Positions 5,340 through 55,246 of a DNA stretch of 64,000 bases are shown in pieces. Numbering within the stretch: the stretch's first letter is position 1; every line of letters starts with the position of its first letter. The position numbers and the translations under genes are program-made. The notes under the pieces are model-generated. The model saw nothing but the letters and a program-made list of their open reading frames with translations. It did not search any database and was not told where the DNA came from. The stretch comes from Eukaryota sp. TZLM1-RC (lineage: Eukaryota > Protista > Metamonada: BaSk clade), in NCBI GenBank assembly GCA_040285825.1, contig JAUPSS010000004.1:124001-188000 (forward strand), read 5' to 3'.

Positions 5340-5810
5340 ATGAGTTTCAATTTAATGTTCTGAACTGGATTATTTACTGTTGTTGAAGCTGTTGTTGACT
5401 TTGTCTCATGTAATGTTGCAAATGACATTTTGGTTCAAAGAAGAAAACTTAATCCTGTAAGTGCTCTTGAATTTAAAGCTAAGAAAAAAATAGAAAATAT
5501 GACAAAGAAATCGAAGAACCTAATGCTGATAGAAATAGATTTGTTGTTTTTAATGCTTTCCCATTTTCGATAAACGGAAGCCTATCAGTAGAAGCAGGAA
5601 CTTTTTTGAATGATTTCCAAAAAATGGTTCAAGAAAAAACAATGAAAAGATTTGATATTTTTTTATGGCGTTCACGGATTCAATTTGCCATTATCAATAG
5701 ATTTACTCGGTTTTTCAGTCGAATTAGAGAAGCTTTAGCTAGACAGCAAGCAGATCAAGATTTTGTAGAGGAAATCTTGCTTCAATGAATTTCGTCCCAT
5801 TAGTTATGAG
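5340..5810 (+). mobile_element. RLE/C-terminal fragment of a CRE-like non-LTR retroelement
   Basis: Encodes VVDFVSCNV..ALEFKAKKK and PFSINGSLSVEAGTFLNDFQKMV..FDIFLWRSRIQFAI; related copy at 44370-44520 (-). Confidence 0.7.
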
Positions 5811-5895
5811 TTTATTTTGTTAAGTGTGCAAGTTTAATAAATTAAAGTTATTATTTACTCCAAAAATCTCAATTTGTTCCCTGCGCTATTTGCCC

Positions 5896-22120: not shown

Positions 22121-22176
22121 TCTTTGAAAAAGTTTTATTTGACCTTCATCTTGATTTGATTGATTTAGGGCTGGTG

Positions 22177-28100: not shown

Positions 28101-31100
28101 TGCGTTGTTCATTAACAATTCATCATCAGTTATTGCAATTGAATCAACCTTGGATCTCAGTAATGTCGTATTTCAAGATCAACTTATTCAACATTATATA
28201 ATTAATATAGAATCTTCTCATTTGGATATGTTTAATGTGAGCTTCTCTGACATTGTAACCACTGGCTTTGACTCAGATTTTACCAAACTTTTGTCCGCCA
28301 AGACCTCCGATTTAACATTGAATTTGGTCACTTTGGATGGTGTTTTTGGTGGATTTTTTGATAGTATCGATAGTAAATGGGATTTGGATTCGGTTCAAAT
28401 TACCAATTCTGAAGCTTTGACTTTCATCAATAGTTTTTTTTCCAACATTGAACTTAAAAATGTTCAATTTAACTATTCTTTCGGCCAATTATTAATAGCT
28501 TCTGATAATTCAACAGTTTCTTCACTGTATTTGGTGGTTGAAAATTTGAATGTTTATGACTCTGTTTTTCAAATATTCGGGTCCTCCTTTAAGTCAGAGT
28601 TTCTCTCTATTTCAACTTCTGTTATTTCGTCTTTGTTGTTCTCTGAAAATTCTCTTATTGAATGGTTTAATGCTAATATTACGGATATTTATTTATCTAA
28701 TGGAAACTTGTTTGATTTTAATTCTTCAACTATTGTTTTGTCCAAAGTTATCATGCTTGGTAGAAGTTTTGACACTATTCCCAATGTATTTGATGGCTTT
28801 GTATATGCTTCAGTTATTCATGCAAAATACTCCACGCTTTCTATTAATGAATCCAATTTTATTGGTTTTCTGATCAATGAGAAGTTGCTTACTGAATTGA
28901 AGATGGAACACTCTAATGTTTACTTTTTTAATTCAAGTTCTCCTTTAGCCTTAACAAATCTTTCTATTTCAAATTCCACTATTTCCTTTTACACTGGTTA
29001 CCCTGTTTTGATTCGGTCTTTTATTTCAGATTTGGATAGTTATATTATTGGATCTGATAAGTATTTAAACCTTGACTATCTTGAAGAGGCTCTAGCTCTC
29101 CGAAAGGTCTGTTATTCAACAAAATCTACTTTATTGGAATTTTCTTTTCCCTTCGCTGAATTGATCAATTACTTAGTAACAATTGATGTTTTTCACTCAG
29201 TTAATGTTGAATTTTCTTTAGCAGCAAACATGTTCCATCTTACGCTTCATGACCTTTTTGCATATTCTATTCAAACAAATTTTATCAAAATCCTGTATTC
29301 CTCCCCCATAATACAGTTTTATTTAGACACTAAATTACCACTGTGTGAACCATCTGTTTCTATGATTTCTCCACCAACAAGAGGAGGATTGTTTGGCTTA
29401 AATGGTGAAAATCTGGGTCATCGTTCCTTATTAATTCAAAGTGACACCCTTGACCTGAGAGTGATTGGGGTCCCGGTAAATCATGACTCTGTTATTTTGG
29501 AAATTCCTCCCAGTTCTGGTTGCCACTATCTAAAATTAAGGAGAAGCGTTGATAATTCTACTATTACTGATATCCTTTGCTTTCAGCCCCCAGTTATTCA
29601 TTCTATTTTTCCAAATCCGTACCAACTTCAAAAAGAAATGAATATTAAAGGTGAGAATTTTGTTATTAATCCTGATTTGTTTGAGTTGACCATGGGAAAT
29701 TTACTGTTCAACTATTCTATAATTTATTTAGATTTTGATGAAGTATTTTTAGAAATTACTCAAATATGTGATCTCAACTTAGGGTCTGTTATTGCAAATA
29801 TTTCAATTTCCAATCAAATTTCGAATAATTATGATTTGGAGTTGAAATTTCCTGATCTCACCATTGATCCTCGATTCCTGAGCCCTTTGGATAACCACTT
29901 GTTATTACATGTAAATGGTGCAATTGATCTTAAAATTTTAATGGAATGTTCTCTTTTGGATTTCTACACCAATTTACCAATGAATTGGGAGCTAATTGGG
30001 TCAAATGTTTTTAATATTACTTTTGAAGCAAATGGTTTGGACAGTTTTCAATTCATTTTTCAAATTTCAAACAATTTTCGTCATTTTATTCAGGTCCCAA
30101 TTTATGCATTTTCGGCATTACCTCCTACGTTTCCTTGCTTAAAAGACAAGTTGTGTATAATAACCATTTGTTTAAAATATGACAACACAATAATAACTGA
30201 TTTTGAACCTCGTGGTAATAATTTTATCTTAGTCAAACATTACCATTACATTGACCAAGAGTGCCTGGAATTGGAATTAATCAGTTCTCAAGATGGGAAT
30301 ATTAATGATCTCAAAATGTGCAATAAGTTATTGTGTAATTCAATTGATTCACTTCCAATAATTGCCAACATCAACTCTGTTGCACCCCCAATATTCCAAT
30401 GGCCTTTTAAAGCTTTTACCTCTTCTATTGTTTGTAGTGGTAGTTTTCTTGATTCTTTTGATCAGCACACGTGGAAGTCGTCACTTTTGATGGATGGAAT
30501 GGCAGTTTCCCCTGTTATTAGTTCAGGTAATCTGACTTTACCAGTCTATTTTGATAAAATTTCCAATGCGACTTTGGAATTCTGTGGTTTTGAAGGTTGT
30601 TTTGTCTTAGCTATTATTCAATGTAACGATTTTGTTGTTGTATCCCCTATTTTTTTCCCTTTTTCCACACTTATCATTTACTCTCGATTTTCTTATTCCT
30701 CGTTAGAACTATTTGTTGGGAATTCACCTGTTCCTATCTCTGCTGGTGACAATCTAATACAATTAACAAACCAACCAGTTATTGTTTTAGATAATATAAT
30801 ACGCTCTAACTTGGTGCAATTTAATTCTTTACCTGATTTTATTGGTTTAAATGTTCCCTTCCAGATTGTTGTTGATCTTACACACTCTGACTTTGATGTG
30901 TCCATTTCTTCTGATTCTCATTGTTTTTCCAATTTCAGTTATATTGGTACTGAATTATCTATAAATATCCTTGGAGAAGAAATTGAATTCTGTGTTCTGA
31001 AGTTGAATTTAAATTACAACGAATCAATTTTATCTAAAGATTTAGTTTTCAATATTGTTGATGATCCTAAAATAGAGTTTTTGGGTCCTAATTATTTCAG

Positions 31101-33990
31101 TTTTACTGAGCAGGTTAGTTTTTCTGTTTCATTCAAAGCTAGTTTCAATTGCTTTTCTGATCACGCTTTCTTTGCTAATTCAACCTTATTAGTTCCTACC
31201 ATCACCTCAAATCTTGATGAATCTGATGATCAATGTATTCAGCAATTCCACTTTTCTTTTAATTTCGGTGAATTTGATTTGAAAAATCCTATTAATTATA
31301 TTGAATTTTCCTGGACTTCAATGTTCTTTAGTCCACAATCTGTCGAAATGCTTGAAATATTCAACCTTGAATTCTTTTCTGACTCAACAGTGTCTTTATT
31401 TGAACCCAGAGATGTAACAGTAATGGTCAATACCATTCTTAACCCTCCAATTTCTGGTATTTTAGAGGGAATTAAATACTTTGCTTTTATTGATGGCAGC
31501 TCTTTGTTATTCAATAACCTTACTATTAATCATTACAGAGAATCTTTTAATCTTAGTTTATTTTACATTGATTTGGAAATTGGTTATGTAGAAGTGACTG
31601 CAGAACCATTTTTTGTTGATAATTGTTATGTTGAATATAATCCAATGCTTTTGGATATTTCTGCAGTAAAAATGGATAATAAATTCAAATCCTATTTGTT
31701 TGACAAGAGCAGGTGTTGCTTGGTTGCAAGTGGGGAGTGTTTTGTGGAATATTTCTCTGGTGATACCTTTAATATTGAATTTTCAGAAGATTATTTCATC
31801 ACCTCAATCACAATTAGTACTAATTCCTCTTGTCTGGGTTCTTTAAGCAAGTCTCCTCTAACGATCCGTGATGTACCTGCTGGTTCTTGGAGTTGTGAAT
31901 CTCTTCTTAATGGGTTTGATTATGCAGCAGTTTGTTCTATTAGTATTAAATTAAATGGAGTTCCTGATGTGCAGTTTGATGTTGTTGAGGATTTGTTATT
32001 GTTTGAAATAGAACTTTATGGCTATAAGGGTAGTCAATGTTTATCGCCAATTGATGATTTTCTTGGTGAAACTCCTTATGGTGACTTTGTTGGTATTAAT
32101 GGTACTTATGAATTCCAAGGAACTCAATTTTCAAAATTCGAGTCAATTTATTCCATTATTCAACCAAGTTTGCAGAAACAAACCATTGGTTCTCTACTTC
32201 CAGTTACTTTTTATTTTAAATCCGATAATTGTTATTATCAATCAGCATTGTTTTCACGTGATATAGAGGTGTTAGTGCCAAAATATATTGAACTTGAAAA
32301 CGACCAAATTTTCAAAAATTCCAACAGTTTTACCATTAACTGTAATTGTTTTGATCTCAATGGCTTTAGTGTACATTGTTTCACTAGTGAAGTTGGTATT
32401 TCTGTAGAGCGGTCAAGTTTTGAATATAAAAGTTTGCACTTGATGAACCCTAATTCAATTAAGTTTACGTTCAGTTCCTCTCCAGTAATTGGAAATCATT
32501 CACTAGAGTTAGTCTCAAATGGTGAATTCTTCACCATCAATTTCACCTTTGTTCAGTCACGTACAACTTATCTGATAACTCAATTAGTTGGTTCAGCTCC
32601 GTGTCATCGTAAAAATCTACTAACAAGTAGTTGTAGTGTGGTGGTATTTCAGGTTGACTTAATTATTCAGGACTTTTTCCACAATATTTCTAATTCTTTA
32701 TCTTTGTATGAGTTGGAAATTTCTAGTTTTTCAGTATTTACTGTCCTGAATGCAACTTATATGGAGGTGGAAGGCCTACCCCTGTCCAATGTTGAATTCA
32801 GTTTCCAGTATCAAGACTTTGTTGCGAATTCAATAATAACATTAGATGATTGTGATCCAACTAGAATTAACCTAAATAACGAATGTCATTGTAAGCCAGG
32901 AACAGTTCCTGGTTCTGTAGGGGAATGTGAACCTTGTCCATTGGGTTATTATTTGGATAATCCTTTGTTAGGGGAGTGTATTAATTGTCCTTATGATATG
33001 ACCACCAATTTAGTTGGCTCTGTGAATATTACTGATTGTGTCTGTCCCAAGGAGAAGTTTAATAATGGGAACACTTGTATTAATTGCCCAAAATATAGTA
33101 ATTGTGAATATGGTGAATTAAAAACTGTTTTAAATGGTTATAAGTTTACCCTCGAAACAGGATCAATATCATGTCCCTATAGGTATTCCTGTAGAAATAA
33201 CCAATGTCGATTTAATACAAAAGGAATTGATTGTACTGAGTGTATTGAAGGGACCAAGAGGTTTGGGTTCATTTGCCTTGGTTCTAGACCATTGTTTGTT
33301 GCTATTTTAGTAACAATTGTTCTTTTAATTTCCTTGTTTTTTAGCGAATATTATCTCAACTTTTGTATCAATAGATTTAATTCAGTACTGGAAAGTTTCT
33401 CAATAGCTTCACTTTCTGGTAACATTGCTTATGCTTTGGCTAAATCAAGAGGAACAAGTATTTGTCCTTTGAGAGCTTTAATGGTGGTTTCAATTTTATT
33501 AAATGATAATATTGTTTTAATCACTGTACCCTTTTCTCTCTCGGCTTCTTTTTTTGGACAGAGCTTTGGTTTTGTCTTACTTATTGGGCTAATATTCGGG
33601 CTTTTTTTGATCTGTAAGTACTATTTTTCTCATCAAAATTCATATGGCAGATCTTATTATTCCTCAATTTGTTCTATTTCCGCTCTAACTGGGATTTTAG
33701 GTAAAATTCTTGAAAGATCAATTGATTTTGAGCTGTTCTTCTTAATTGGAGTTTTGCTGATCAATTTTTGGACAATATCTGCCACTAAGATCAAAACCGA
33801 AGAATTCCAAACACTTGTGGTCATCTTTTTCCTTTTATCAATAACTTATCTTCCGTTGTCATTATATTTGGGATTTCAAATTGTAAGCTTTTTGATTCTT
33901 TTCTTTAGTTCTGGCTGGTATAATGCCAGCTTGTCTATTTTTGTTATATTGTTCTGCATCATTAAATTGATGATTCATAATTTAGGATAG
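22177..33990 (+). CDS. Giant (~3940 aa) predicted surface protein: signal peptide, three RCC1/BLIP-II-like propeller blocks, beta-helix-like region, IPT-like segments, Cys-rich repeats, C-terminal multi-TM region
   Basis: Hydrophobic N-terminus (FILLLLLLTLVGG); repeated ISAG..HSL..G.V.SWG.N..GQLG; CEPCPLGYY..C..CP..TT..C.C; several hydrophobic helices at the C-terminus. Confidence 0.9.
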   Translation: MVSCTRSACFILLLLLLTLVGGSDVYLKESLNPDELLTWSSNNIWKPFPPSSESIVYLSGGFSIIVFDEVTIHSLHLDNVTMVVDCSFTILGSTVLKGAVIQSLTKSPEFFTSTNLTLLGTSLLKSLNLSVLHSAELIEGDLNLDNSQLLIAREAVLAVKPIFSLVAWGDGDSGKTGTGIVGVHGMLPIKTEEELTGIAAGQIHSLGFTSEGDVFIWGNNNFNLLGLGRFGHVFTPTKVPDISDVVQVSAGAYFSLARGKYGDVYSWGRGADGRLGHGDDRDQRSPKKIDSLSNVIDISAGRVHGLALLESGEVKVWGYNFFGQLGLGEGSADRVYSPVSNGLSSIRKVLGCHDYSLVIDEFDRLRAAGLNNDGQLCIGNNNDHFTFEYIHSYDTYAVVHASCSVFTIFSTNENAFVCGSVNRGYQIRFDIKNVVKVFAGNDVAYFLTFDGLLFKYDFVDTILTPIDSLLADDLSAGDVHFLGNLSISPSIISNDGNSIVKVDGVFETHFSGIFILNVPLIITSGGKLQSFSGGIYFQKLVENLGSILTFSSLKVSFFANLDLIGGIVYAESPIVLHKTAVLQGFGLINGNFQQYGALLLTGDMDFIQNLEVFDNSIIKFESFSEPPPSLFVKGKAILHYVDIQSEDLVGNFTAVDLDLIGDVYLSSIWLSIVGNGKLLSGNLHLTNSKVIIEDSGSVSVDSILNPVLMAWGDGGNGKTGTGTFVNHEPLPVITEMEFDTLAVGFDHTLALNAHRQLYTWGANSFGQLGVGYSSPSGGINWINTFYQIEQISAGNQFSLARTTLGHVLSWGSGSFGKLGHGSKDDLHEPTIVALSADPSAIDISAGDSHSLVVEAPASAGDSNILWSWGHAATGALGGGYIGVYRSTPGKFYGQFYKQSVKKVIGCPFFSLFITEEDQLFASGSNDQGQLCVGDTNNRFSPTAINSVSSFNVVSAACGSGYTIFVNDFGEVFSCGRVLGRSINNPTEAYSPGKVTGFGNNVDSIGGGLDEAFVLLSNGVLFRFSQFSDLIPFKGSVLTSIYCGFYHGFGHSHSLPSISAYGDDSSVRVDGILENHSLGTISITPPLFVDQNAQVSAVNGGIKFDGIVQNSGIINSFENVELIFTFVLNLEAGHVISYSPILNYFGVVFSGSGLIDADILHYGELYSTGYMEMSKDVISFDYSIIKFESFSEPPPSLFVKGKAILHYVDIQSEDLVGNFTAVDLDLIGDVYLSSIWLSIVGNGKLLSGNLHLTNSKVIIEDSGSVSVDSILNPVLMAWGDGGNGKTGTGTFVNHEPLPVIVDEVFDSIVGADFHSLGLTSEGFVFSWGSGSNGQLGFGDYQPRFFPTQIPSLQNVVQISAGILFSLARTAEGDVYSWGFGLFGRLGHGDSEPRLSPTKIDSLSGVNYISAGDSHAISIVYDGIVYSWGYNHYGQLGFESDSSEEDTPRVASFDTTPVKKVIGCPFFSLFITEEDQLFASGSNDQGQLCVGDTNNRFSPTPINSVSSFNVVSAACGSGYTIFVNDVGEVFSCGRVLGRSIYNPTEAYSPGKVTGFGNNVDSIGGGLDEAFVLLSNGVLFRFTEFSGVSSFDVPPVGQIFTGDSFLFGIFLNMPSFHGDQASLLQVSGSLQGLASSTFSFHVAVDVSGILLSASHDLMFHENLIISGSVDCITDCKINLFRQCSLVGGEIAATQVVINSYSRVLGFGFINSDVINNGIIEPTEVIEIANTLTLPHTSIVILNNKYGNDAQLLVGGTLFLDGLLVVDFSHQLLSKGSVFALLLFSNSVGDFNSVDLSCSSYFLFNLGEDLLELTVSEDIVSDLNQISFISPYGANDDCCGTFLLPCLSLSRIQSRMGSRGTVHFFEGRYSELNFDVPLNAVDYRLEPINSGNEFQFTSPIKTQMSFVIFDQFNIHFEETEFLHTTSSVVELDNVVFTGHVTDFIISVRSTIRIYGINSFVESPNTALFDLDLSTLLLNNALFINNSSSVIAIESTLDLSNVVFQDQLIQHYIINIESSHLDMFNVSFSDIVTTGFDSDFTKLLSAKTSDLTLNLVTLDGVFGGFFDSIDSKWDLDSVQITNSEALTFINSFFSNIELKNVQFNYSFGQLLIASDNSTVSSLYLVVENLNVYDSVFQIFGSSFKSEFLSISTSVISSLLFSENSLIEWFNANITDIYLSNGNLFDFNSSTIVLSKVIMLGRSFDTIPNVFDGFVYASVIHAKYSTLSINESNFIGFLINEKLLTELKMEHSNVYFFNSSSPLALTNLSISNSTISFYTGYPVLIRSFISDLDSYIIGSDKYLNLDYLEEALALRKVCYSTKSTLLEFSFPFAELINYLVTIDVFHSVNVEFSLAANMFHLTLHDLFAYSIQTNFIKILYSSPIIQFYLDTKLPLCEPSVSMISPPTRGGLFGLNGENLGHRSLLIQSDTLDLRVIGVPVNHDSVILEIPPSSGCHYLKLRRSVDNSTITDILCFQPPVIHSIFPNPYQLQKEMNIKGENFVINPDLFELTMGNLLFNYSIIYLDFDEVFLEITQICDLNLGSVIANISISNQISNNYDLELKFPDLTIDPRFLSPLDNHLLLHVNGAIDLKILMECSLLDFYTNLPMNWELIGSNVFNITFEANGLDSFQFIFQISNNFRHFIQVPIYAFSALPPTFPCLKDKLCIITICLKYDNTIITDFEPRGNNFILVKHYHYIDQECLELELISSQDGNINDLKMCNKLLCNSIDSLPIIANINSVAPPIFQWPFKAFTSSIVCSGSFLDSFDQHTWKSSLLMDGMAVSPVISSGNLTLPVYFDKISNATLEFCGFEGCFVLAIIQCNDFVVVSPIFFPFSTLIIYSRFSYSSLELFVGNSPVPISAGDNLIQLTNQPVIVLDNIIRSNLVQFNSLPDFIGLNVPFQIVVDLTHSDFDVSISSDSHCFSNFSYIGTELSINILGEEIEFCVLKLNLNYNESILSKDLVFNIVDDPKIEFLGPNYFSFTEQVSFSVSFKASFNCFSDHAFFANSTLLVPTITSNLDESDDQCIQQFHFSFNFGEFDLKNPINYIEFSWTSMFFSPQSVEMLEIFNLEFFSDSTVSLFEPRDVTVMVNTILNPPISGILEGIKYFAFIDGSSLLFNNLTINHYRESFNLSLFYIDLEIGYVEVTAEPFFVDNCYVEYNPMLLDISAVKMDNKFKSYLFDKSRCCLVASGECFVEYFSGDTFNIEFSEDYFITSITISTNSSCLGSLSKSPLTIRDVPAGSWSCESLLNGFDYAAVCSISIKLNGVPDVQFDVVEDLLLFEIELYGYKGSQCLSPIDDFLGETPYGDFVGINGTYEFQGTQFSKFESIYSIIQPSLQKQTIGSLLPVTFYFKSDNCYYQSALFSRDIEVLVPKYIELENDQIFKNSNSFTINCNCFDLNGFSVHCFTSEVGISVERSSFEYKSLHLMNPNSIKFTFSSSPVIGNHSLELVSNGEFFTINFTFVQSRTTYLITQLVGSAPCHRKNLLTSSCSVVVFQVDLIIQDFFHNISNSLSLYELEISSFSVFTVLNATYMEVEGLPLSNVEFSFQYQDFVANSIITLDDCDPTRINLNNECHCKPGTVPGSVGECEPCPLGYYLDNPLLGECINCPYDMTTNLVGSVNITDCVCPKEKFNNGNTCINCPKYSNCEYGELKTVLNGYKFTLETGSISCPYRYSCRNNQCRFNTKGIDCTECIEGTKRFGFICLGSRPLFVAILVTIVLLISLFFSEYYLNFCINRFNSVLESFSIASLSGNIAYALAKSRGTSICPLRALMVVSILLNDNIVLITVPFSLSASFFGQSFGFVLLIGLIFGLFLICKYYFSHQNSYGRSYYSSICSISALTGILGKILERSIDFELFFLIGVLLINFWTISATKIKTEEFQTLVVIFFLLSITYLPLSLYLGFQIVSFLILFFSSGWYNASLSIFVILFCIIKLMIHNLG
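24020..26914 (+). repeat. Two near-identical intragenic duplications: 24020-24375 = 25718-26073 and 24872-25246 = 26540-26914
   Basis: 356-bp and 375-bp blocks repeated almost exactly at the nucleotide level. Confidence 0.9.
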
Positions 33991-35349: not shown

Positions 35350-38200
35350 TGTTGCCTAAAGTCTAATGTAATAAGAAAAGTCTGATTTGTTTTCCAATGA
35401 TATGATATAAGCCTTAGGATGCCAACACTACTTCTTGCCTTTTTCACAATCTATCAGCTTATATGAATATGAAACAAAACTATAAACAAATAACCAAATA
35501 AATCGCTTCCTAATTCTGATGCTACGTCTAGAGCGCTTAGGAAGCGTAGATTCAATGGAGGTGACTTATCGTTGACTAGTGGCACGCTTACCAATTTTTT
35601 TTATTCTTACTAAATAGCCCATAGGGTTCTATGTGTTGGAGAGGCTTTTTCCGTTGTCTCACCGCCAAACCATTGAAGAGTACAGAAACTACCTGAGTCA
35701 GAGCTATATTCTGAGAGGATTTTCTCTTTAACGTGTTTTCCGACATCGCCTGCTGCGACTGCTTTGAGAAATTTAATATCCTGTGGGCTCTCAGCGTTAT
35801 AGATTTTACAATCTTTCTTAGCATCTTTTAATCCTGTGCCAGTAGTAAGATTTTTTAATAATGAAGTGTATTTGGAAGGGGTGTCAATAACTAAGAACGG
35901 TCTATTCCAAGATCCATGCAGTTTACTATTTTGTTTGGTTTCACGTAACATTTCACCAATATTAAATACTAGAAAACACGAATCAGTATTATCTGCTGCA
36001 GTAGGAGTATCAAATGTTTGATGACGCTCTGCTTCTTCCCTTTTTTCCTGAGGACGATATTTTTAAATTTAATGTCATCCAATAAAGGTATATTAGTTTC
36101 GAATTTAGATAATTTTATTACTATGTTTGCAGGGTCTGTTCTTGGACTAATCGAGGAACTGACCATAAGTTTGTATGGAGTAACACCAGTTTTTCTGCTT
36201 TGAGTCGAATTTATTAATAGTTGGGATATGGGTACATAGGTTGACCAATTTTCGTAATCATTAAAATCTATTAATAGTTTCCTTAAGAATTGAAGAACGT
36301 CTCTATGTTTACGTTTCACAAAACCATTACTTTCTGAATAGTGGGGTTATTGAGTAACTCATCTCAATTGATAATCTATTACACACTATTTTGAAGGTCT
36401 CATCGGCAAACTCGGAACCATATCACTATGAATTAACATAGTTACACCAAAGATGGCACAATCATTCCAAATCAAAACGTCTGCGGTTTCTAAGGCAATG
36501 AGTTCTTTTAGAGGGACTAAAATTGGATATCCAGTAAAAGAGTCTACCAATAATAATAAATATTCATTTCCTTGTTAGTGTTCAGAGGTCCAATTGTATC
36601 GACGTTTAATCTGGCAAATGGAGAGTCTGTACACAGAGATCCTGTGGAAGGTGTTTTTGACATTTTAAATGGAGCCGTTTTTTTTGACAAGTTGGGCAAC
36701 TTCTGACATGATTTATAAGGTCCTTTAGCAAATTAGGCCAATAAAAATCACCTTTGGATAGATTGTGTAAACTATCGTTTTTGCTGGGGTGGCCAGATTG
36801 AACTAAACCATGTATCAATAATAGTGCCAGTTTTCTGAGTTGTCAGCATGCTGAGTAGCCATAGCAAGATGTTGGTGTAGAGGAGGAGAGTAAATACTAT
36901 GGTTTATTAAAGAAAAGTGATGTAATGTAGCTTTATAAGGTTCGATATCAGAGGAGGACAAAGAGTAGGAGCTTAGGCAAAAAGGGTACGTAGCTTTTAT
37001 GCGTTGATCTTCTTTAAGAACCTCTTGGATGCAGTCTATTATTCAGTTGACGGAGTTGGCTCTAGAATCGTTAGAGGAGTGTGTTACCTGATTAACACTT
37101 TTTCGTGTGTTATGCTTCTTTGAGAAGGAAGCCTAGCAGCCTTGAGGACGACGAGATTTCTGGCTGGCCTTGCATTTGGCTTTAGAGCAATCTTTGGTCA
37201 TATGACCGGGCTATCTGCAATGAAAGCATTTACAGGAGAGTCTTGACGAGCGCTTGAATAACTAGACCGGTGGGATTGAGAAGTAGCAGGTTGTTTGCCT
37301 GAAAAAGGAACAGAACGGGAGGGGGAGTTGCGATATTGTTAATGAGGGGTTCTACGAGAGGAAGGAGATTGACGAGGGGAGCGAGAGTCTCTTGAGGGAG
37401 GAGGAGCAGTATCTTTATTTGCACAATATCCCGCATAGGGGAGGTGATAAGCGGGAAGGAGCCCGCGGAGGCGAAAGACGAGAGAGGCTAAGCTATAGAT
37501 GGTTCCAACTTCAATATCAGTTTTAAGCACTAGCTTAAGCTTGTCAGGATGGATTCCGTTGACAAAGAACTTCATCTTAGCCGAATCAGGAAATGGAGAA
37601 AGACAGAGTCGAACAAGTTTGAGAAACTGAGAGATGTACGAGCAGCATAGCTTCAAACAAGCGGTCTTCTTCAGAGCTGCAACGGAATTCGAATGAGGCT
37701 AATCCAGAGCGAGCAGGAGGAGTAGAGGCGGAGAAACCAGCTTCTTTTGAAGGATCTTCCAGAGGATGGGAGGAAACGGGCTGAGCACTGATTTGATTGA
37801 TCAGGTTCGGTATTAGAGTCAGAGGCTTCTTCTAAAGCTTGAAGGCGAAATGACTCGAGAAAGTCTACTTCTCCAGTCTTCAATCTCCATGGACATAGCG
37901 GAGATGGCAGAGCTCGCATCAACAACAGAGGTAGGACGGAAGGCTTCTCTGGTGGAAGAGGACTGGGAATGAGTGGCGAAAGGATATCTTGTCGCATCAA
38001 ACAAGACATGACAAGACATACGCTGAACACAACCTTTGATGTTTTAACATAGCAGGAGACGGATTCTCGACTGGTATGACTTAAGTATGGAGCAACAAAG
38101 TTAGCTGAGGTCGAGAACGGGACGGATTCTCTACGGGCTCCAGTAATTACTGTTGCTATCTGTGCACGGTTCATCATAAGCTAATAAAAACGGGCGTTTA
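35350..38200 (-). mobile_element. Degenerate Ty3/Gypsy LTR retrotransposon: gag with CCHC knuckle and integrase, no RT, 78-bp 3' LTR
   Basis: gag 37150-38177 with CFHCR*PGHMTKDC; integrase H..GHP..FYWP..C..C, VDSFTGY, HSDMVPSL, NSTQSRKTGVTPY, KLHGSWNRPF. LTR 35350-35427 bounded by TGTTG..CAACA and preceded by a purine tract. Confidence 0.85.
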
Positions 38201-39500: not shown

Positions 39501-39525
39501 AAACAAAGAGAGAGAAAAGGAACTA

Positions 39526-39571
39526 CTGTGAATTTCGCTTTTCATGCATTCTCCTTTGTGATTTTCACTTC
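39526..39571 (+). repeat. Left terminal inverted repeat of the IS630/Tc1-Fanzor transposon, preceded by TA
   Basis: CTGTGAATTTCGCTTTTCATGCATTC matches the reverse complement of 47842-47867 at 24/26; TA at 39524-39525. Confidence 0.8.
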
Positions 39572-39606
39572 TAAAGAATAATCAGAAATTTTCGACCTCC
39601 TTATCT

Positions 39607-39915
39607 ATGTTTGGTCCTTCTTCATTACCACCTTTTCCTCTCACTTTTGATGATTCATTCAACTTTTCGAATGCTCGGCCAACTTCTCCATCAACAGTTG
39701 ATACATCAAGTCCCGAAAATCTTGCATCTGACATAGTTGATGAAGCCCCTTCTGCCGTTATTTCGCTTTTCCCCTTGTCTTCTTATGCTCCTCGGCCTGT
39801 TGACGTTGCTTTTTCTTAAATCAAAGGTGGTAGACCTTTCTTGGAGAAACTGATCAATGTCTATGTTCCCTCTGATCTCCGAAATCTATCAGTTAGTACA
39901 TTCCAAGAAATTGTA
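39607..39915 (+). pseudogene. Probable N-terminal fragment of an IS630/Tc1-like transposase
   Basis: Directly inside the left TIR. RPFL..PSDLRNLSV resembles RPFL..SPDLKSLSV at the start of the minus-strand transposase, and both share AGACCTTTCTT. Internal stop at 39819. Confidence 0.45.
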
Positions 39916-39958
39916 ATAGGTTTATACATAGAGGAACTCGAAAAAAACAATAAACCAC

Positions 39959-40678
39959 CTATTCTTCCTGATGAACATGGAAAAAAAGTGTCCCTGTGAC
40001 CTCAATAGCAACAACAGCACTTACTTGGACCTGTAGCATTTCAGGTTGTACAGTGTATATGGATTGTCCTTTGGGAGAACGACCATAGGAACGAGCATTG
40101 ACTTGTGTTTTAAACGAAAGTTCATCAATAAAAACCAGTTGATGATGTAGTACAAGTCCAATGTCAAGCATATAATTAGTCTCTAACTTTGTTATAAGCA
40201 ACAACTTCGCCCTTCGGACAAGATTCTGGCACTTTTTGTATGAGTACCCATGTCTAACAAGTATTCTGTGAACAGTTGTTATGAAAATGGTTTTATTAAA
40301 CTTAGAGCGGACGAAAGAACGGATTTCTCGTAAGAAAGAAAGCGGATCCTTTTCAACGAAAGCTAGTAGTTCCTCTTCTTCTTCAGATGTCAAGATACAC
40401 CGAGAATCATGTGATAGGCAGTCTTCATCAGCAGATTCCTCCTCACTAACATAAAGACCGGCAAGTATCTTCTCCTGCCGTGTTTTGAGGGTTAGATAGT
40501 AGCTCACCCATTTACTGATGGATGATTGTGAAACTGAAAATAGTTCAGCTGTTTGTCTTTGTGTACAACCAAGATAAAGATAGGTGTACACAGCTCTTAC
40601 TTTGGTGTCTTCTGTGGGGCGTACAGACAGTGACTTAAGGTCAGGAGATGTCAAAAGAAGGTCAAAAGATAGCCCCAT
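39959..40678 (-). pseudogene. IS630/Tc1-mariner-like transposase, truncated in the DDE domain
   Basis: HTH TQRQTAELFSVSQSSISKWV; VEKDP..FLREI..TTVHRIL..GYSYKK; first catalytic D in LVFIDE; YGRSPKG; VSAVVAI. Stop before the second D. Confidence 0.85.
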
Positions 40679-40748
40679 AAGAAAGGTCTAGAATTGTAGA
40701 GGTCTAGAATTGGATTCGACCGATATTTCTGAAAATTGTAAACCTCAA

Positions 40749-41005
40749 CTGTGAAATTTACTCCTGTTTTTAACTTTCTTAATGTCATGTCCACTCACAG
40801 GCTGTAAGAGACATGTAGCGTCATTTGACAAAGACAATCATGATTTCATTAATGTGGTTCCTCACTTATATACACCTACTGCTTTTACAGAACAAAGCCT
40901 CACAACTTGATGTGTCTAGGTAAATCTACCAAATGTATTAGTAGCAATTGTTGATCGGTCTCAAAAGTTTTAGTTTGTTTTTGCTCAGGTTTTTCAATCA
41001 TCTTT
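40749..41005 (-). ncRNA. Second (degenerate) copy of the candidate Fanzor omegaRNA scaffold
   Basis: Collinear with 47595-47839, including a 52-nt block with one mismatch. Confidence 0.65.
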
Positions 41006-43600
41006 TTAACAGAGCTTTTGGGCAAATGTATCTCTCCGGACACAATTCCGCTCTCTGCTTAATTTGAACATTTTTTACAGTGGAATATCTCTGTCATGTG
41101 TTATGTAACACTCAGTAGGTATAACCATCTTCCATGAGACTGCTTGAATATTCTCATCTGCTTGTATTTAATTCAGTGGTTGAGTAGTACTTGACGTCCT
41201 TTTGATAACACCACCATTTTCTAAAAGCTTTTGCTGAGCGATATCGATTGATTTTTTTCGGTAATCAGGAGGGAAATCAGCAGAGCCTACAGCAAGGGAA
41301 AGTTTTTCAGGATACCCATCCAGCCTTGGAAATTTGTTGAGGCTCTCTCGGATCCATTTCTCCTTTCGTCTACGGTTGTCCGATTATCCATTTTGATTGT
41401 TTTCCATTTCTGGCGATTACTTTCCCCCTGACCAAAATCCAATGGTTTAAATATTGGTTGAAATTTTGAACGGAATATTGGTTGGAAAACTGTTCACTGG
41501 GTGAAAGTTTTGTCATGTATCTCCTGCATGTTAGACAAGGGATTACTCCACATTGATCATCATTTAAGAAGTAACCACATAAACTAGATTGGCCCAGATC
41601 AACACCGATAAGGAGCTTTTCAGGTATTGTTTCGACTGGATGTCTGCGTCTTGGCATTTTTTAGAACACTTCAACTGTTGCCGTAGGTCGGAAAGGAAGG
41701 GTTGGATAAAGACAATGAGGAAAAGTTGATTTATTTTCTAATCATAACATATAAGCCTTAGGGCGCCAACACTGCTTCTTCCCTTTTTCAAAATAAATCA
41801 ACGTATATGAATATAAAACAAAACTATAACAAATAACTCAATAACTATAAATACTAAGAGCTAAATACTAAATTCTAATGTTTTCTATTGTCTACAATTA
41901 TCTTTGTAGTGATTGGGATTCCCACAAACACTGGTTTCACATTTTGAAGATCGACAATTGATGTACTATGACTCTCCCACAATAATATTAGTATAAGGTA
42001 GTAAGCAATAACTGAAAAGGGCCTCGTTCCAAAATCTATGTGCTCGAATACTTTGTTGTGTATGTTTTAATCGCTCCATAAAGATGCTCTGCTTCTTCCC
42101 TTTTTCGTAAACGAGAAACGTGGTAGTGTTGTTTAGTAAAGGTATCATGGAATCGCAGAATGGATTCCCTGATAATTATGCAGGGTCTGTGTTGAATCAA
42201 AAACAACAGTAAGCAAAGTAACAAAGCTCAGAAACCTAAAGGCGGCGTCTTTTGTTGTTAACGTACTGGATTTTCGACTAAAAATATCAGAGGTACAAGG
42301 ACTGTATCTTTGCATTGTTGTACAATAACAGTGGAGGTGGAGTTTCTACTCGTAACCTCGTATTTGGTCGACCTTTCTCGTGTTTGGCGTGTCTGAGCTG
42401 CTCGAATGGATAAGAGTCCATTGATTCGAGGTAAGGCTCTGCGTCCTTGTTAGGAGTTTGTAGAATCCATCACTGGAGTCATCTTCCCCTTCCGTGGTAT
42501 GTACTCTCCTGAAGGGGTTGATTATGTAAAGTGGGGGTTCCATCCGTTTCTTTACTAGATGCTACATTAGGGAGGGGAGAGGGAACCAAGTCCGTTGTCG
42601 TGGCCTGCTCTGACTCTTCTGGGTTCTGCTTCCTTTGTGAGGGGAGAGGGAACCGGGTCCGTTCTCGTAACCTCTGAAGAAAAAACCATTTCCTTGAGAG
42701 GGCAGGAAGCCACGTCCGTCCTCTTAAACTCTATTAGGGTCTCCTTTAAAGTTCAAAGTTTGAAATCCAACGTTTCTTCCTCTCTTTGCAATTTGCTTCC
42801 ATAAAGGAGGGAGCTGCTCAAACAAACAGTAATCTGTAGATTCGAGGTGAGCCTCCGCGTCTTTCATAATTTGATGGCGAAGTCCTTTCTCTTCGTCATC
42901 CGATTTGTCTAAGACGGATTGAAGTTTTTCATATCCTTGAGGGACTGTCGAACTTGAACCAACATTTGCGTTTTTTGGTAAGGAACGGGGTGGTCCCATT
43001 TTTGAACCCTTTTGTGGTATTAAGTTGGACTTGGAAAAGGCGGCAGGCGGTTCCGAGCCTGGTTCCATCGGTTTTCCTTGAGGAGGGGCGGAGGTTGTCT
43101 TGACCCCGAGTCCTCGACTATACTAGTCTCTACTACTGCTCCTACTACTCCTTCTGTTGTCCGTATGCTAAATGTATCCCTGTCTTGTTCCTGCATGTTA
43201 ATTTTGACGGTGTCAGTATTTTGGCTGGAAGGGAATGACATGATATCTGCTAAAGATATCCTCTGTAAATAAAGCTGGGTGTTGTCAAAGTGGTATACCT
43301 ATTTACCTATATGGCCAATAATTATTGATGCCGTAGGTCGGAAAGGAAGGGTTGGATAAAGACAATGAGGAAAAGTTGATTTATTTTCTAATCATAACAT
43401 ATAGCATAACATTAGGGAACCAACACAAGTGTACTTCTCTGGTTTTGTTGGCATAAGGGTCACTTTTCAGTTCTTTTCTTGATATTCTTTTCCTTTTTGA
43501 TGGTTCGTCCAGGTTATTTGTGTTTACTGAATCATTATTTTTACCTTTCAATGTCAAAAGCAGGCCATTGCCATTTCTTTTTTCTGTAAAATTTTTTTCT
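41000..43600 (-). pseudogene. Degenerate second Fanzor copy (C-terminal half), split by an LTR element
   Basis: 41000-41675 encodes MPRRRHPVETIPEKLLIGVDLGQ..LAVGSADF..RYICPKALLKR and matches 46886-47594. 43426-43600 matches 46720-46890. Confidence 0.9.
41676..43425 (-). mobile_element. Non-autonomous mini LTR retrotransposon (1.75 kb, ~100-bp LTRs, TRIM-like)
   Basis: LTRs at 41676-41771 and 43326-43425 share a near-identical core and have TG..CA ends; purine tract GAAAAAGGGAAGAAGCAG before the 3' LTR; 4-bp TSD CAAC/CAAG; internal broken ORFs; 3' region homologous to 35400-35500. Confidence 0.85.
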
Positions 43601-44339
43601 GGTTATGTTGCAACGGAACCTTGAATAGACCTCCTTCCGCAACAAGTGTTTCTCTCTCAGTATTCTCTCTTGTTTTGGTTTCTGGTGTGTTTTTTATGGA
43701 TCGTTCTTTTCTCAATCATTCTAATTTCCCTCGCAAACCGTCTTTGCCAAGCCTTAGAAATCCTTCTGTACTCCTTTTACGTGTTTTCCTACTCATTGTT
43801 GGCCCTTTTTTACCTTACACTTGCTGTTGGTTGCCATAAATCAATTGTTCGACTCGTCCTAAACCCCACCACTCTCTTCGAATATGCCCATTCCTCTCCA
43901 TCGTCAGCTCGATTACAATCCAATTTTTCTCTTCTCTTAGACTCTGTCAAAATGGTTGATCAGAGTTGTTCACATTGCCTCAATTTCTTAAAACTTGAAG
44001 TAAGTTGTTTAAAAATTTCAAATTACCAGAGATTTTGGGATTTTGTAATTTAATGAAAAATGTTTGGAATTGTTTCGATCAAATTTCATTACCATACGAA
44101 TGGTAAAATTAGTTTTTTCAGACTTTTACCTTTTTTCCAGAATTTCAAGTCCACTTGTCTATTAGTTTGTTTGAATCAAATTAAAACTAAAATTCTCAAT
44201 TTGTATTTATTGATAAAATGGATTTCTTCCGTTTATAAAATTCAATTGTTTCACTGAAATAGAAATTGATTCCCATTTTTAAATTGTCTATTCAACCCAT
44301 CATAATTTAAAACAATAACAACATCCATGTTTTTTAGAT

Positions 44340-44525
44340 TGAACTACAACAGTTAGAAAATTAAAATCAAAACTAATGGGACTAAATTCAGGCAACAATC
44401 TCTTCATTGTTTTATCTTGAACCAATTTTTGAAAATCATCCAAAAAAATCCTGCTTCTACTGCTAGTCTTGCGTTTATCGACAATGAAAAAGCAACAAAA
44501 ATGTGGTGTGTTTCTATCTGGTTTC
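44340..44525 (-). mobile_element. CRE-like retroelement 3' fragment
   Basis: DKRKTSSRSRIFLDDFQKLVQDKTMKR; nucleotide similarity to 5570-5650. Confidence 0.65.
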
Positions 44526-45033
44526 CAGCTGCCACAACAACCCCTTTTGGAGGTCATCAAACAAAACAGCTGATGTAGATATCATGCTGTACAACCGATA
44601 CACGTGTACATTTTTAGTACTCAAAAAATTAATAAACATTTTATTCTATAATTTCTGAGAAGAAATCCTCGAACAAGCATCTATAAAAAGATGTTCATAG
44701 TTGAGATGAAGACTGTCTTTACTGTTAAACAAGTCCGCTAAGACAATTGTGTCAAACTAGACCAATTGGTTGACTAATCTTCAAACAAGAAGTGTTTCAG
44801 CTAGTGAGATATAGTAAATTGTGACAGAACGTAGTACAAAGTGAAAAACTTCAGCGAAAGTGGACACCATAAATAGTTAATGGAAGGAGAGCGACATAGG
44901 TTGATTAGAAGAGGGAATTGGCAGAAACATCCACGACTGGAGCAACAGAAATTGAAAGAATTAGCTCAGAGGGATTTTGATGGGGATTATTATTCAACCA
45001 AACGCCAGCTAGTAATTTGTCATTTTGGGATTC

Positions 45034-45384
45034 TTAGATTACTTCACACTCAAGTTGCTGGTTTAGTGATTGAACACTGCTCATTTCTTGGTTAAGTTGT
45101 GATATGTGCGCATCATGAGAGTGTAGAGACGACAGAGCAAGGGAAAGAGAGGACTGTAGTTGAGATTCAATTGAGGTAAGTTCTGCATTGATATCATGGC
45201 GAAGGTCATTGAGATCAGAACGAAGCGAGAACGCATTTGAAACCTTCTGGAGTGTGTCTGGAGCGAACAATACATCACTTACTTGTGGAAGAGGAAGATT
45301 ATGTGATTTGCAGTAGTTTTGATAAGTAGTGATTGTGTGTTTAAGCTGAATCACCTTGGTTTGTAAAGAATTGAGTTTAGACAT
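45034..45384 (-). CDS. Hypothetical coiled-coil protein (possibly truncated)
   Basis: 116-aa ATG ORF with heptad-like Leu spacing; the frame continues past the TAA. Confidence 0.4.
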   Translation of the reverse strand: MSKLNSLQTKVIQLKHTITTYQNYCKSHNLPLPQVSDVLFAPDTLQKVSNAFSLRSDLNDLRHDINAELTSIESQLQSSLSLALSSLHSHDAHISQLNQEMSSVQSLNQQLECEVI

Positions 45385-45639
45385 CGGCTAATAACACAAA
45401 ACGTCAAACAGTGGTAACCTGTTGAGATTAATGGAGGACGTGGATAAAATGAACTGAGATGCTGAACTACTCAGTTGGAGAATTCTTACAAAGTAAATGG
45501 AAAGTGTGGGAAAGTGTGGGAATAGTGAAAACCTCCCAAAACCAAGTTGAGGGTTAAAAACCTCCCAGAATAGGCAACCAGAAGTCGAAAATGGGTGACA
45601 AGTGTAAAATTTGATAGATGAGCTCTTTATTCTCACTAC

Positions 45640-47594
45640 ATGTCAGACACCCCCTCTGTATCACGTGTATTCACTCGGTCTTGTGCACTTAACTCGCTGC
45701 TGACCCCTGCAGCGGTGCAACAAATTCGGACTGACCTTCCTGTGGTCACCGAGATTTGTCATGAAGCGTCTTTATTACTTCAATCTTTTTCTTCTAAATT
45801 TTCCGTTGGCATCAAGAGGTTTAGTGGAACAGGATGTATGGTATCTGTTTATGACCGTCATCACCACTGGTTCTTTTCCAAAGCCTTCCACATCTAAAGG
45901 CCAACGCCAATTACTCCATATCTTTTACAATGGATTTCTTCCTGAATGCCCACAAGACAGGTCTCTTGTTTCTGTGTGGGAAAATTCTTTAGTGCCTTAC
46001 AGAAATTCATTCCATCTTTTCCTCAATGATTGGCTGCAGTCCCAGAACTGTAATTTTATCAATAGAAAAGGGCTTTCTTCTTATCTTGCCTGTCGTGCTC
46101 GTCAATTGGCCTCCAACGTTAAGACATGTTTACCCAAAATTTGTCAATCCTGGACAAAAACTTTATTCGTGCTCATTGTAGAGCCCTGAATAAAACAAAT
46201 GTCTTTGCAAATAATATTCTTTCACTTTTGCCAGATGAACTACTAGCCCAACCCGAGGAAGTAGTAGTTGATTCTGTTCTTGAATACCTCATCAATTTCA
46301 ATTTGAATAATTCAAGAGAAAGATTTTTTTTATTGAATGCATGTAGGTTTATCTTGAATCTCTTTCAAAGATTTCCTACCACTGCCTCCCTACTGTCCTC
46401 ACATGATAAAATCACTTTTTCATCAAAGGAAATTAGTGAGCTTTTTCTCTTCAATCTTAAAATTTCACAATACTTACTCACTTTCTTTTCTCATATGCAT
46501 TGCTGGAAGAAATTTAGAATAATACCTTTAGCTTCTCATAAAGGTTCTAAATTTATTGAGGTACCTTCACAAATTTTCCACTCTGTGAAAAAATTTCCAA
46601 TTATTGAAGGATCATCTTCCAAAACAAAGTTTATCAAAAATACATGTCTGAAACGAGTATTCAAACAATGTCCTTACCAAAAATTCAATATCAACAGAAA
46701 AAGTTTGAAAAATAGATTTAACAAAATTTTATTGAAAACTAATGGTAATGAACTGCTTTTGACCTTTGAAGGTAAAAATAATGACTCAGAAAACACAGAT
46801 GAGCTGGATGAACCACCGAAAAAGAAAAGAAGATCAAAAAGTGAAATGAAAAGTGACCCTAATGCCAACAAAACCAGAGAAACACAGTTGAAGGGTACTA
46901 AAAAATGCCCCGTCGAAGACGTAGACATCCAGTCGAAATTTTACCTGAAAGGCCCCTTATCGGCGTTGATCTTGGCCAATCAAGATTATGTGGTTACTTC
47001 TTAGATGATAATCAATGTGGAGTTATCCCTTGTCCAACTGGCAGAAGATACATGACAAAAAATTCACCCAGTAAACACTCTCCCAACCAATATTCCGTTC
47101 AAAATTTCAACCAATATTTGAACCATTGGAATTTGGTCAGGAGGAAAGTGTATTTGGAAAGTAATCGCCAGAAATGGAAAATAATTAAATTTGATAACCG
47201 CAGACGAAAAGAGAGACGGTTCAGAGAGAGTCTCAACAAATTTCAAAGTCTGGCTGGACATCCTGAAAAACTCTATCTTGCTGTGGGTTCTGCTAATTTC
47301 CCTTCTCATTGCCGAAAAGTCAATCGATATGGATCAGCAAGGGCTTTCAGAAAATGGTTGTGTTATCAAAAGGACGTGAAGCACTTGTCAACCAGTGAAT
47401 TTAATACAAGCAAAATGTCAAGTTGTTGCATGGCCGAGAATATTCAAGCAGGCTCATGGCAGATGCGTATTTGTACTGAGTGTCAAATAGTATATGACAG
47501 AGATATTTCCGCTGCAAAAAATATTCAAATTAAGAAGAAAGCGGAATTGTGGCCGGAAAGATACATTTGCCCAGATGCTCTGCTGAGGAGATGA
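45640..47594 (+). CDS. Fanzor (Fanzor1-like, TnpB-related RNA-guided RuvC nuclease), ~650 aa across three frame breaks
   Basis: N-terminal EICHEASLLL and ARQLASNVK; RuvC-I LIGVDLG; LAVGSANF; RuvC-II TSEFNTSKMSSCC; zinc finger CTEC; RuvC-III YDRDISAAKNI; NLS-like PPKKKRR. Frame breaks near 45790, 46157 and 46900. Confidence 0.88.
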
Positions 47595-47867
47595 ATAGGG
47601 AACGTGAGCATACAGAAACAAAAACTTTTGAGACCGATCTACAAATACCTTAGTAGCATTTGGTAGATCCACTTAGATACATCAAGTCGCGAGGCTTTGT
47701 TCTGTGAAAGCAGTAGGTGTATTTAAGTGAGGTAGCCCATTGATGAAGATCATGATTGTCTTTGTCAAATGATGCTACATGTCTCTTACAGCCTGTGAGT
47801 AGACATTGAGAAAGTTGAAAACAGGAGTGAATTTCACAGGGGAATGCATGATAAGTGAAATTCACAG
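47595..47867 (+). ncRNA. Candidate omegaRNA scaffold of the Fanzor, ending at the transposon right end
   Basis: Non-coding, conserved in the second copy, with hairpins at 47636-47669 (GATCTAC..GTAGATC) and 47779-47806. Its position between the stop codon and the element end fits TnpB/Fanzor architecture. Confidence 0.7.
47824..47867 (-). repeat. Right terminal inverted repeat, followed by TA
   Basis: Contains two AGTGAA(T/A)TTCACAG subrepeats and is inverted relative to 39526-39571; TA at 47868-47869. Confidence 0.8.
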
Positions 47868-47882
47868 TAGATTACTTCTTTG

Positions 47883-54272: not shown

Positions 54273-55246
54273 TGGCAGTTTGGTAATAAATGTTTGTTTT
54301 TGAATTTGCTTTATTTTATATTTTTTAATTCATCATTAGGTTTTGATGGAATTTTACAATGCAAATATTAATTGCCGCATACAGTTACAGCAAATTCTGA
54401 TCTAGATTATTTAAAATTTGAACCTTGGTGGGTAGTTTTTTCTTTATTCTACATGAATCAAATTTCTAAATTGCTGGTTATATTGAATCTCACAAATGCC
54501 AAAACAGACAGCCCTTATGGATGAAATTCATTGAACGTTGATTTCCGTTACAAAATCATGTTGTTCGTTTTCTTGCTTCAGCTAATCTAATTCAGAAGAA
54601 AAACCGTGGTATCTGATGTTGAAGGTTTCAGAAATTTATCAATTCTTTTCATTGATATTTACCCCATTTTATTGGACTTTTCAAAATATTTTCTGCTCCT
54701 ACTGATAGTTCTACTTTCAATAAATATGTGACAGTACAAGTTATTGGCTTCTATCAGCATTAGCTTCCATAACTGTATAATCATTTTGCCTTTGAATTTC
54801 TTGTAATTTGAAGTAAAGTGCCCAAATTAATCAATTTTGTTTGGTGCACCAGAATTTCATTTTAAGCATTAGAGAAGACAAAGTCAACAACTTCAGAATT
54901 ATGAAGTCAATCACGGTATATGTCGCCCGTGTCATACGAAGCAAACTTGATAAGCAATAATGTTCTTTTCAACACAGGACCTTTGAAATTTCGTATTTAT
55001 AATTATTAGTAAAATTATCGTTTTAATTTGTTGTTGTATTTTTTTTTTCAATTGTTATCAACAGAGATTATATGAACTTTTCCTATAGAATTTGGTGGCA
55101 GTTGCGGTGATTCCAGTGCTCTTATCTGTGTATATCCAGTTCTTCATTTGTTGGCAAAATGAATTATTGGAAATTAAATGGGATGTTAAAATTAAAGTGA
55201 TAAACAACACACCAACAGGTCTCCTCTCAATTCACCTTGTTCCTCA

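Follow-up and report, generated by a model that had tools for sequence, protein, structure and literature searches.

Tail-out Fanzor1 copies and a nested IS630/Tc1-like element resemble a single transposon in the metamonad Eukaryota sp. TZLM1-RC

Fanzor1 genes are carried by the Helitron2-type elements CRe-1, CRe-2 and CRe-3 of Chlamydomonas and by MCi-2 of Mucor (Bao and Jurka 2013; PMC3627910), and these follow the same pattern as the family described here. The cause of the variable-length duplications seen with Fanzor-bearing elements has been called unknown (10.1101/2022.12.15.520654), while duplication of a TA is the rule in the superfamily of IS630/Tc1/mariner (ITm) elements (PMC13469147). 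We have analysed a window of 64,000 nt from Eukaryota sp. TZLM1-RC (contig JAUPSS010000004.1, 124,001 to 188,000), in which a sequence-only reading had described the 8.3-kb interval 39524-47869 as one element, running from a terminal inverted repeat (TIR) through a transposase, a Fanzor gene and its omegaRNA to a second TIR. The interval very probably comprises instead four independent insertions, namely a Fanzor copy (A), a nested IS630/Tc1-like element, a long terminal repeat (LTR) element and a second Fanzor copy (B), and belongs to the history of a Fanzor family that probably spreads one-endedly. All of these parts are dead at this locus.

Anatomy of the interval

Coordinates refer to positions in the window, A lies on its minus and B on its plus strand, and L001-L010 denote other loci that were read. 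The inverted pair is present just as it was first described: a 26-mer begins at 39526 (39526-39551) with TA outside it at 39524-39525, and its inverse, identical at 24 of 26 positions, ends at 47867 with TA outside at 47868-47869. The pairing is not due to chance, since the window holds no further match to the 26-mer with seven or fewer mismatches. The pair is real, yet it is not a pair of TIRs, for each arm is the 3' (omegaRNA-side) end of a Fanzor1 copy, the same end in both cases; as A and B are oriented tail-out with identical right ends, these ends mimic TIRs. The fallback offered with the original claim, that the arms might be two ends from sister copies, was therefore correct, since each arm is a right end.

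That the parts are independent, where they begin and end, and which duplications flank them are matters of observation. The 11 bases that follow 47867 recur exactly at 45035-45045 (probability about 0.002 for a random 11-mer in 1.3 kb), so that B extends from 45046 to 47867 and the right-hand TA is simply the first two bases of its own duplication; the empty site of B is GGGATTCT-TAGATTACTTC-TTTGATG, and not the junction around a single TA that had been predicted. Copy A, an older sister of B, was recovered by self-comparison as an inverted second Fanzor copy at 40749-41678 and 43426-43598, 81-82% identical to B and split by a 1.75-kb LTR remnant. The nested element sits 28 bp inside its end, and when 39556-40748 is excised together with one AG, the tail of A rejoins its outer 28 bp to give an end that is collinear, base for base, with those of B and the other copies (nine other ends). 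The junction of A with the nested element is no assembly artefact, since a read contig spans 39478-39628 without differences; this evidence comes from read contigs only, from a run that may derive from the assembly's own sample.

The nested element has ends of its own and, elsewhere, a life of its own. The similarity of three other loci (L001-L003) to the window begins at exactly 40748 and is lost beyond about 39556, which places the boundaries at the same points, and the family occurs Fanzor-free at five other loci. Of six copies, five have flanking 2-bp duplications (AG for the window copy, TT at each of L001 and L003, and CA and GC at two copies from Skoliomonas sp. GEM-RC1), and at L003 empty tandem copies of the target long interspersed nuclear element (LINE) give direct evidence that what was gained is the element and two further bases. 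Nor does the transposase start behind the left arm, as had been supposed: the plus-strand open reading frame (ORF) there, with its ATG at 39607, is the 5' part of a second gene, whereas the transposase lies on the minus strand from 40678 and reads towards the arm. These Fanzor-free copies, with their own ends and 2-bp duplications, also exclude an arrangement in which the transposase belonged to A as a fixed component and B arose by its deletion.

Sister copies of the Fanzor confirm the polarity of the 26-mer. One protein cluster at 90% identity has at least 82 annotated members in the Eukaryota sp. TZLM1-RC genome, and the family is young; from these we read eight copies in seven loci (L004-L010). 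In all eight the 26-mer is confined to the 3' end and never occurs on the 5' side, as a TIR would; the six of these ends that are intact have TA or TT directly after them. No copy read pairs a transposase with a Fanzor gene, there being no transposase match in the seven Fanzor loci and no Fanzor match in the five transposase loci. A search of viral contigs with the 26-mer gave no match.

Table 1. Parts of the interval and their positions in the window
Feature	Position	Strand	Remarks
Outer 28 bp of A's right (3') end ('left TIR')	39526..39553	-	25/28 identical to B's last 28 bp; flank begins TA (39525-39524)
2-bp target duplication AG of nested element	39554..39555	-	partner copy at 40749-40750
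Separate IS630/Tc1-like DD34E element, imperfect TIRs TTGAGGTTTAC / TTGTGATTTTC	39556..40748	-	1193 bp, internally deleted
5' remnant of convergent second gene (ORF2)	39607..39975	+	45% identical to L001 ORF2 aa 29-143
Transposase aa 1-237 (helix-turn-helix (HTH), first Asp)	39968..40678	-	84% identical to P0002; second Asp and Glu lost by deletion
Conserved 3' tail of A (omegaRNA candidate)	40749..41000	-	severed from last 28 bp by insertion
RuvC/zinc-finger part of A, frameshifted	41001..41675	-	52% to P0038 aa 422-651 across frame breaks
LTR-element remnant inside A	41676..43425	.	LTRs of ~100 bp (TG...CA); related copies in reads
Middle piece of A (aa 366-417)	43426..43598	-	gene's 5' part missing
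Upstream segment of A	43724..43931	-	common to 5' segment of L010, 77% identity
Left copy of B's 11-bp target duplication TAGATTACTTC	45035..45045	+	reads have loose ends at 45040
Variable 5' segment of B with truncated start of divergent coiled-coil ORF (45384 downward)	45046..45507	+	absent from other copies
Conserved upstream core common to B-type copies	45508..45639	+	missing in A
Fanzor1 gene B, dead	45640..47594	+	single-base indels near 45790, 46161 and 46904 against intact 651-aa L005; PF07282
Conserved, probably structured 3' tail of B (omegaRNA candidate; 'right TIR')	47595..47867	+	ends in twice-repeated palindromic motif
Right copy of B's 11-bp duplication	47868..47878	+	host ATG at 47883

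The right arm is indeed preceded by a Fanzor gene, as had been described, and by a conserved, probably structured tail, the gene at 45640-47594 being broken by three single-base frameshifts; B is 97.6% identical to the intact 651-aa copy at L005. Judged by sequence, the C-terminal RuvC/zinc-finger motif with the Gly and Glu typical of Fanzor1 is present in the intact sister P0038 (D442 in GVDLG, G549 in VGSANF, E586 in SEFNTS, CxxC at 612 and DRD at 620; PF07282 above its cut-off) and broken in both window copies. The tail is likely to be an omegaRNA scaffold that would take its guide from the flank. It is more conserved than the gene, and in B it folds better than shuffled sequences (z = -4.2) with no compensatory change and no covariation among eight copies, for which reason we call it a candidate; a search of Rfam gave no match at gathering score. 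The palindromic motif of B's tail, at 47827-47839 and 47855-47867, ends in CACAG and can form an 11-bp stem. The last base of its inner occurrence lies 28 bp short of the 3' end, and this occurrence bears a loose resemblance to the 5' end of long copies, in a gapped match to a motif that lies within the hairpin.

A and B both lose their frame at one and the same A-run ahead of the RuvC part (41650-41680 and 46880-46905). The intact copy at L005 has one extra A at that run and an open frame, and so a base lost from the homopolymer looks a better explanation than a programmed frameshift that the gene requires. The LTR remnant in A has a near-match 4-bp flank (CAAC/CAAG), a related stretch at 35375-35501 and many related copies in the read contigs.

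An intact form of the nested element is found at L001: 2360 bp long, it encodes a DD34E transposase of 376 aa, which scores above the IS630 cut-off, and in convergent orientation an ORF2 of 349 aa, and its ends are short, imperfect inverted repeats beginning TTGAGG, the first nine bases being identical at both ends. Homologs of the transposase come from the same Eukaryota sp. TZLM1-RC assembly (GCA_040285825.1); P0002 scores 120.6 bits against NF033545 (cut-off 100), with D185, D271 and E306 and a spacing of 34. This two-gene layout recurs in a relative from Skoliomonas sp. GEM-RC1, whose ORF2 is 24% identical (E 3e-20). The intact ORF2 protein had no match in Pfam or NCBIfam, and in ESM Atlas only unnamed clusters and a poor model. 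In the way it works the nested element resembles ITm elements, of which it is a non-TA variant; no equivalent of such a DD34E family was apparent from the titles and abstracts listed by literature searches, which is weak evidence of absence.

Two of the loci that hold the DD34E family have further structure. At L001:9880-14293 the intact element is followed, after 33 bp, by the start codon of a relative that is older and broken and likewise has a convergent ORF2 (44-56% transposase identity), a second case of this family landing in or near the end of another element. L002:11656-20801 and L003:11656-20801 overlap in opposite orientation and contain two inverted copies, 98.5% identical, at the same site of a tandem LINE array; the pair is probably a local inverted duplication.

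B inserted 15 bp before the start codon (47883) of a host gene that encodes a 2130-aa putative ZNFX1-like helicase. In the sister copies at L004-L010 the next annotated gene on the same strand starts 40-630 bp from the right end, so that exact docking on start codons is not a property of the family.

A dispersed repeat of about 420 bp is present in many copies, at 44338-44518, 5547-5846, 54519-54891 and 61869-62052 of the window and at L005:12226-12664; in the L005 copy the Fanzor right end has lost its last three bases to this repeat. Elsewhere in the window, a 45-bp tandem array (19350-19781) lies within a 959-aa ORF, and a 3944-aa ORF (22156-33990) has RCC1-like repeats and an internal duplication of 1.7 kb.

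Spread of the Fanzor family

In proposing how this family moves, we need to explain a fixed 3' end together with a variable 5' side. The eight sister copies read share a core from about 45508, and their 5' parts differ, carrying fragments of host genes: an MJ1316 domain (identified with Pfam) and chaperonin-like and RCC1-like pieces recognised by eye. The left arm of long copies (L007:8188-9584) strings together pieces like the C-terminus of a CCT chaperonin subunit, a single RCC1 repeat and MJ1316, in the manner of Pack-type gene capture. The 5' segment of B is probably likewise a host segment captured from the flank of a donor; the sequence at 45040-45300 is found elsewhere in read contigs with a different left neighbour. 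Four of nine copies have duplications, of 11, 13, 13 and 12 bp, with a possible fifth of 8 bp; those of the truncated copies L008, L009 and L010 (13, 13 and 12 bp) lie at or near their 5' junctions, and the 8-bp repeat, at L007, is accompanied by filler.

We propose that A, the older sister, was in place on the minus strand, and that a two-gene DD34E element jumped by cut-and-paste into its last 30 bp, duplicating AG and later losing its middle. An LTR element inserted in A's gene, and B arrived before the host start codon with its own duplication. For the family as a whole we infer one-ended spread, in which the 3' end would be joined precisely at an AT-rich T^TW site and copying would run back over a variable distance, sometimes taking in flanking host DNA. 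The 5' side would then be closed by repair across a stagger of 11-13 nt, with microhomology or filler. The mobilising enzyme would be supplied in trans, and our first guess is an HUH/Helitron2-like enzyme.

Several observations sit uneasily with this model. The long copies at L005, L006 and L007 share a fixed left end, CTGTGGTTGAATTT, that is weakly similar to the right end, and in long copies the flanks match over no more than 2 bp (TT/TT, TA/TA), a pattern that is also within the reach of a DDE transposase. The left end and target duplication of A were looked for and neither was detectable; no autonomous Helitron2 partner was found, no search having been directed at one; and the copies read are only eight of at least 82.

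The left end of the long copies (L005:8738, L006:8775, L007:8188) reads in reverse like a right end (AATTCAACCACAG). It may be a right end captured from another Fanzor family, in which case these copies would be true composites with two right ends. Two other notions were entertained for the family as a whole and given up: that all Fanzor copies have 2-bp duplications, which the duplications of 11-13 bp weaken, and that a guide directs homing to look-alike sites, which is rejected as the right flanks have only T[AT] in common.

A fixed 3' end, 5' truncation, duplications of 11-13 bp, AT-rich targets and 5' microhomology are hallmarks of LINE activity. All of them fit the truncated copies, and elements with reverse transcriptase are abundant in the loci fetched, so these copies could be retro-copies made by a resident LINE, through target-primed reverse transcription of an RNA ending in CACAG, rather than products of DNA-based one-ended copying. 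We consider this improbable, because the copies compared lack a poly(A) tail and because up to 1.4 kb of the copies lies upstream of the Fanzor promoter region and takes in the starts of divergent genes, content that would be atypical of a Fanzor transcript.

The DD34E family and the Fanzor ends

The right end of the DD34E family matches that of the Fanzor at 13 of 15 positions; in the window nothing other than the element ends scores as high, and the two bases that were duplicated by the nested insertion are the final two of the inner CACAG motif. This similarity may reflect shared ancestry of the ends or targeting, on the strength of a single insertion that was picked for being there. It admits an account with the same anatomy in which full-length Fanzor copies would travel as non-autonomous passengers of the DD34E family, mobilised in trans, by cut-and-paste, through a transposase that recognises the Fanzor end motif and for that reason inserted at this very point. 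The match of the right ends, the CTG...CACAG termini that the GEM-RC1 relative shares with the Fanzor, the matching 2-bp flanks of the long copies and the exact point of insertion all favour it. We nonetheless judge it unlikely. Just one of six DD34E insertions read falls in a Fanzor end, at a locus chosen for that reason, and the right end at L001 matches at only 11 of 15 positions; the 2-bp flanks rest on two copies in AT-rich DNA, while L007 also has its repeat with filler; the similarity of the left ends is modest (p about 0.001-0.015, uncorrected); and four copies have duplications of a length not expected from a DD34E enzyme. Quite unlikely too is a broader scheme in which this non-TA, two-gene IS630-like family would recognise the Fanzor end motif, move full-length copies in trans and insert preferentially into omegaRNA ends, severing the last stem and replacing the guide, while truncated copies would spread by a second, possibly Fanzor-assisted, route that leaves the duplications of 11-13 bp.

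Hardly credible any longer is a single IS630/Tc1-Fanzor element of two genes, with 26-bp TIRs and a TA duplication, swollen by nested insertions: it has in its favour the inverted match with TA on both sides and the existence of such elements (PGv-1 and PUl-1; PMC3627910), and it is ruled out by right ends that are collinear, the left arm being the right end of A, by a right-hand TA that belongs to an 11-bp duplication whose partner lies within the interval, by the transposase having its own TIRs and duplication and occurring alone elsewhere, and by the want of a 5' 26-mer or a transposase in all eight other Fanzor copies. Likewise excluded is the idea that A and B formed a composite and afterwards moved together, since the right flank of B still matches its internal 11-bp partner.

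Had the one-element reading been true, it would have identified the transposase of a Fanzor family, which the present analysis does not. What the locus offers is a warning that tail-out right ends of sister Fanzor copies can mimic TA-flanked TIRs. With its intact 651-aa gene (L005) and a 3' boundary exact to the base, the family is suited to tests of the omegaRNA and the transposon-adjacent motif (TAM), and also to the open question of variable-length duplications in Fanzor-bearing elements (PMC3627910; 10.1101/2022.12.15.520654). An IS630-like DD34E family without TA preference is unusual for its superfamily and worth a biochemical look.

Comparison with known systems

The family most closely resembles CRe and MCi-2, with which it shares a Fanzor1 gene without a transposase, a near-identical 3' region with a fixed 3' end, variable 5' regions, duplications of 11-13 bp on truncated copies, extra sequence after the 5' duplication and AT-rich targets. 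The variable duplications of 7-19 bp by which CRe and MCi-2 are recognised are present here on part of the copies. It differs in its target (T^TW, where theirs lies after TTTT), in an end formed by a twice-repeated palindrome closing with CACAG and in its host, a metamonad; in the literature searched we found no paper that combines Fanzor and metamonads. The likeness to the Helitron2-type CRe lies in the arrangement of ends, 5' regions and duplications.

At first sight the interval is also reminiscent of the mariner-type PGv-1, PUl-1 and PUl-4 (PMC3627910), with a Fanzor1 gene near an ITm transposase and inverted sequences flanked by TA. However, the arms here come from two elements, the TA is not the duplication and the transposase belongs to an element of its own. 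The intact form of that element has the HTH and a DD34E domain above the NCBIfam IS630 cut-off, short TIRs, a 2-bp duplication and an extra gene, as have IS630/Tc1/mariner elements including the multi-gene Dici (PMC13469147). Unlike them, its family duplicates bases other than TA, has TIRs that are short and imperfect, and carries a convergent second gene without a known domain that is conserved in Skoliomonas sp. GEM-RC1.

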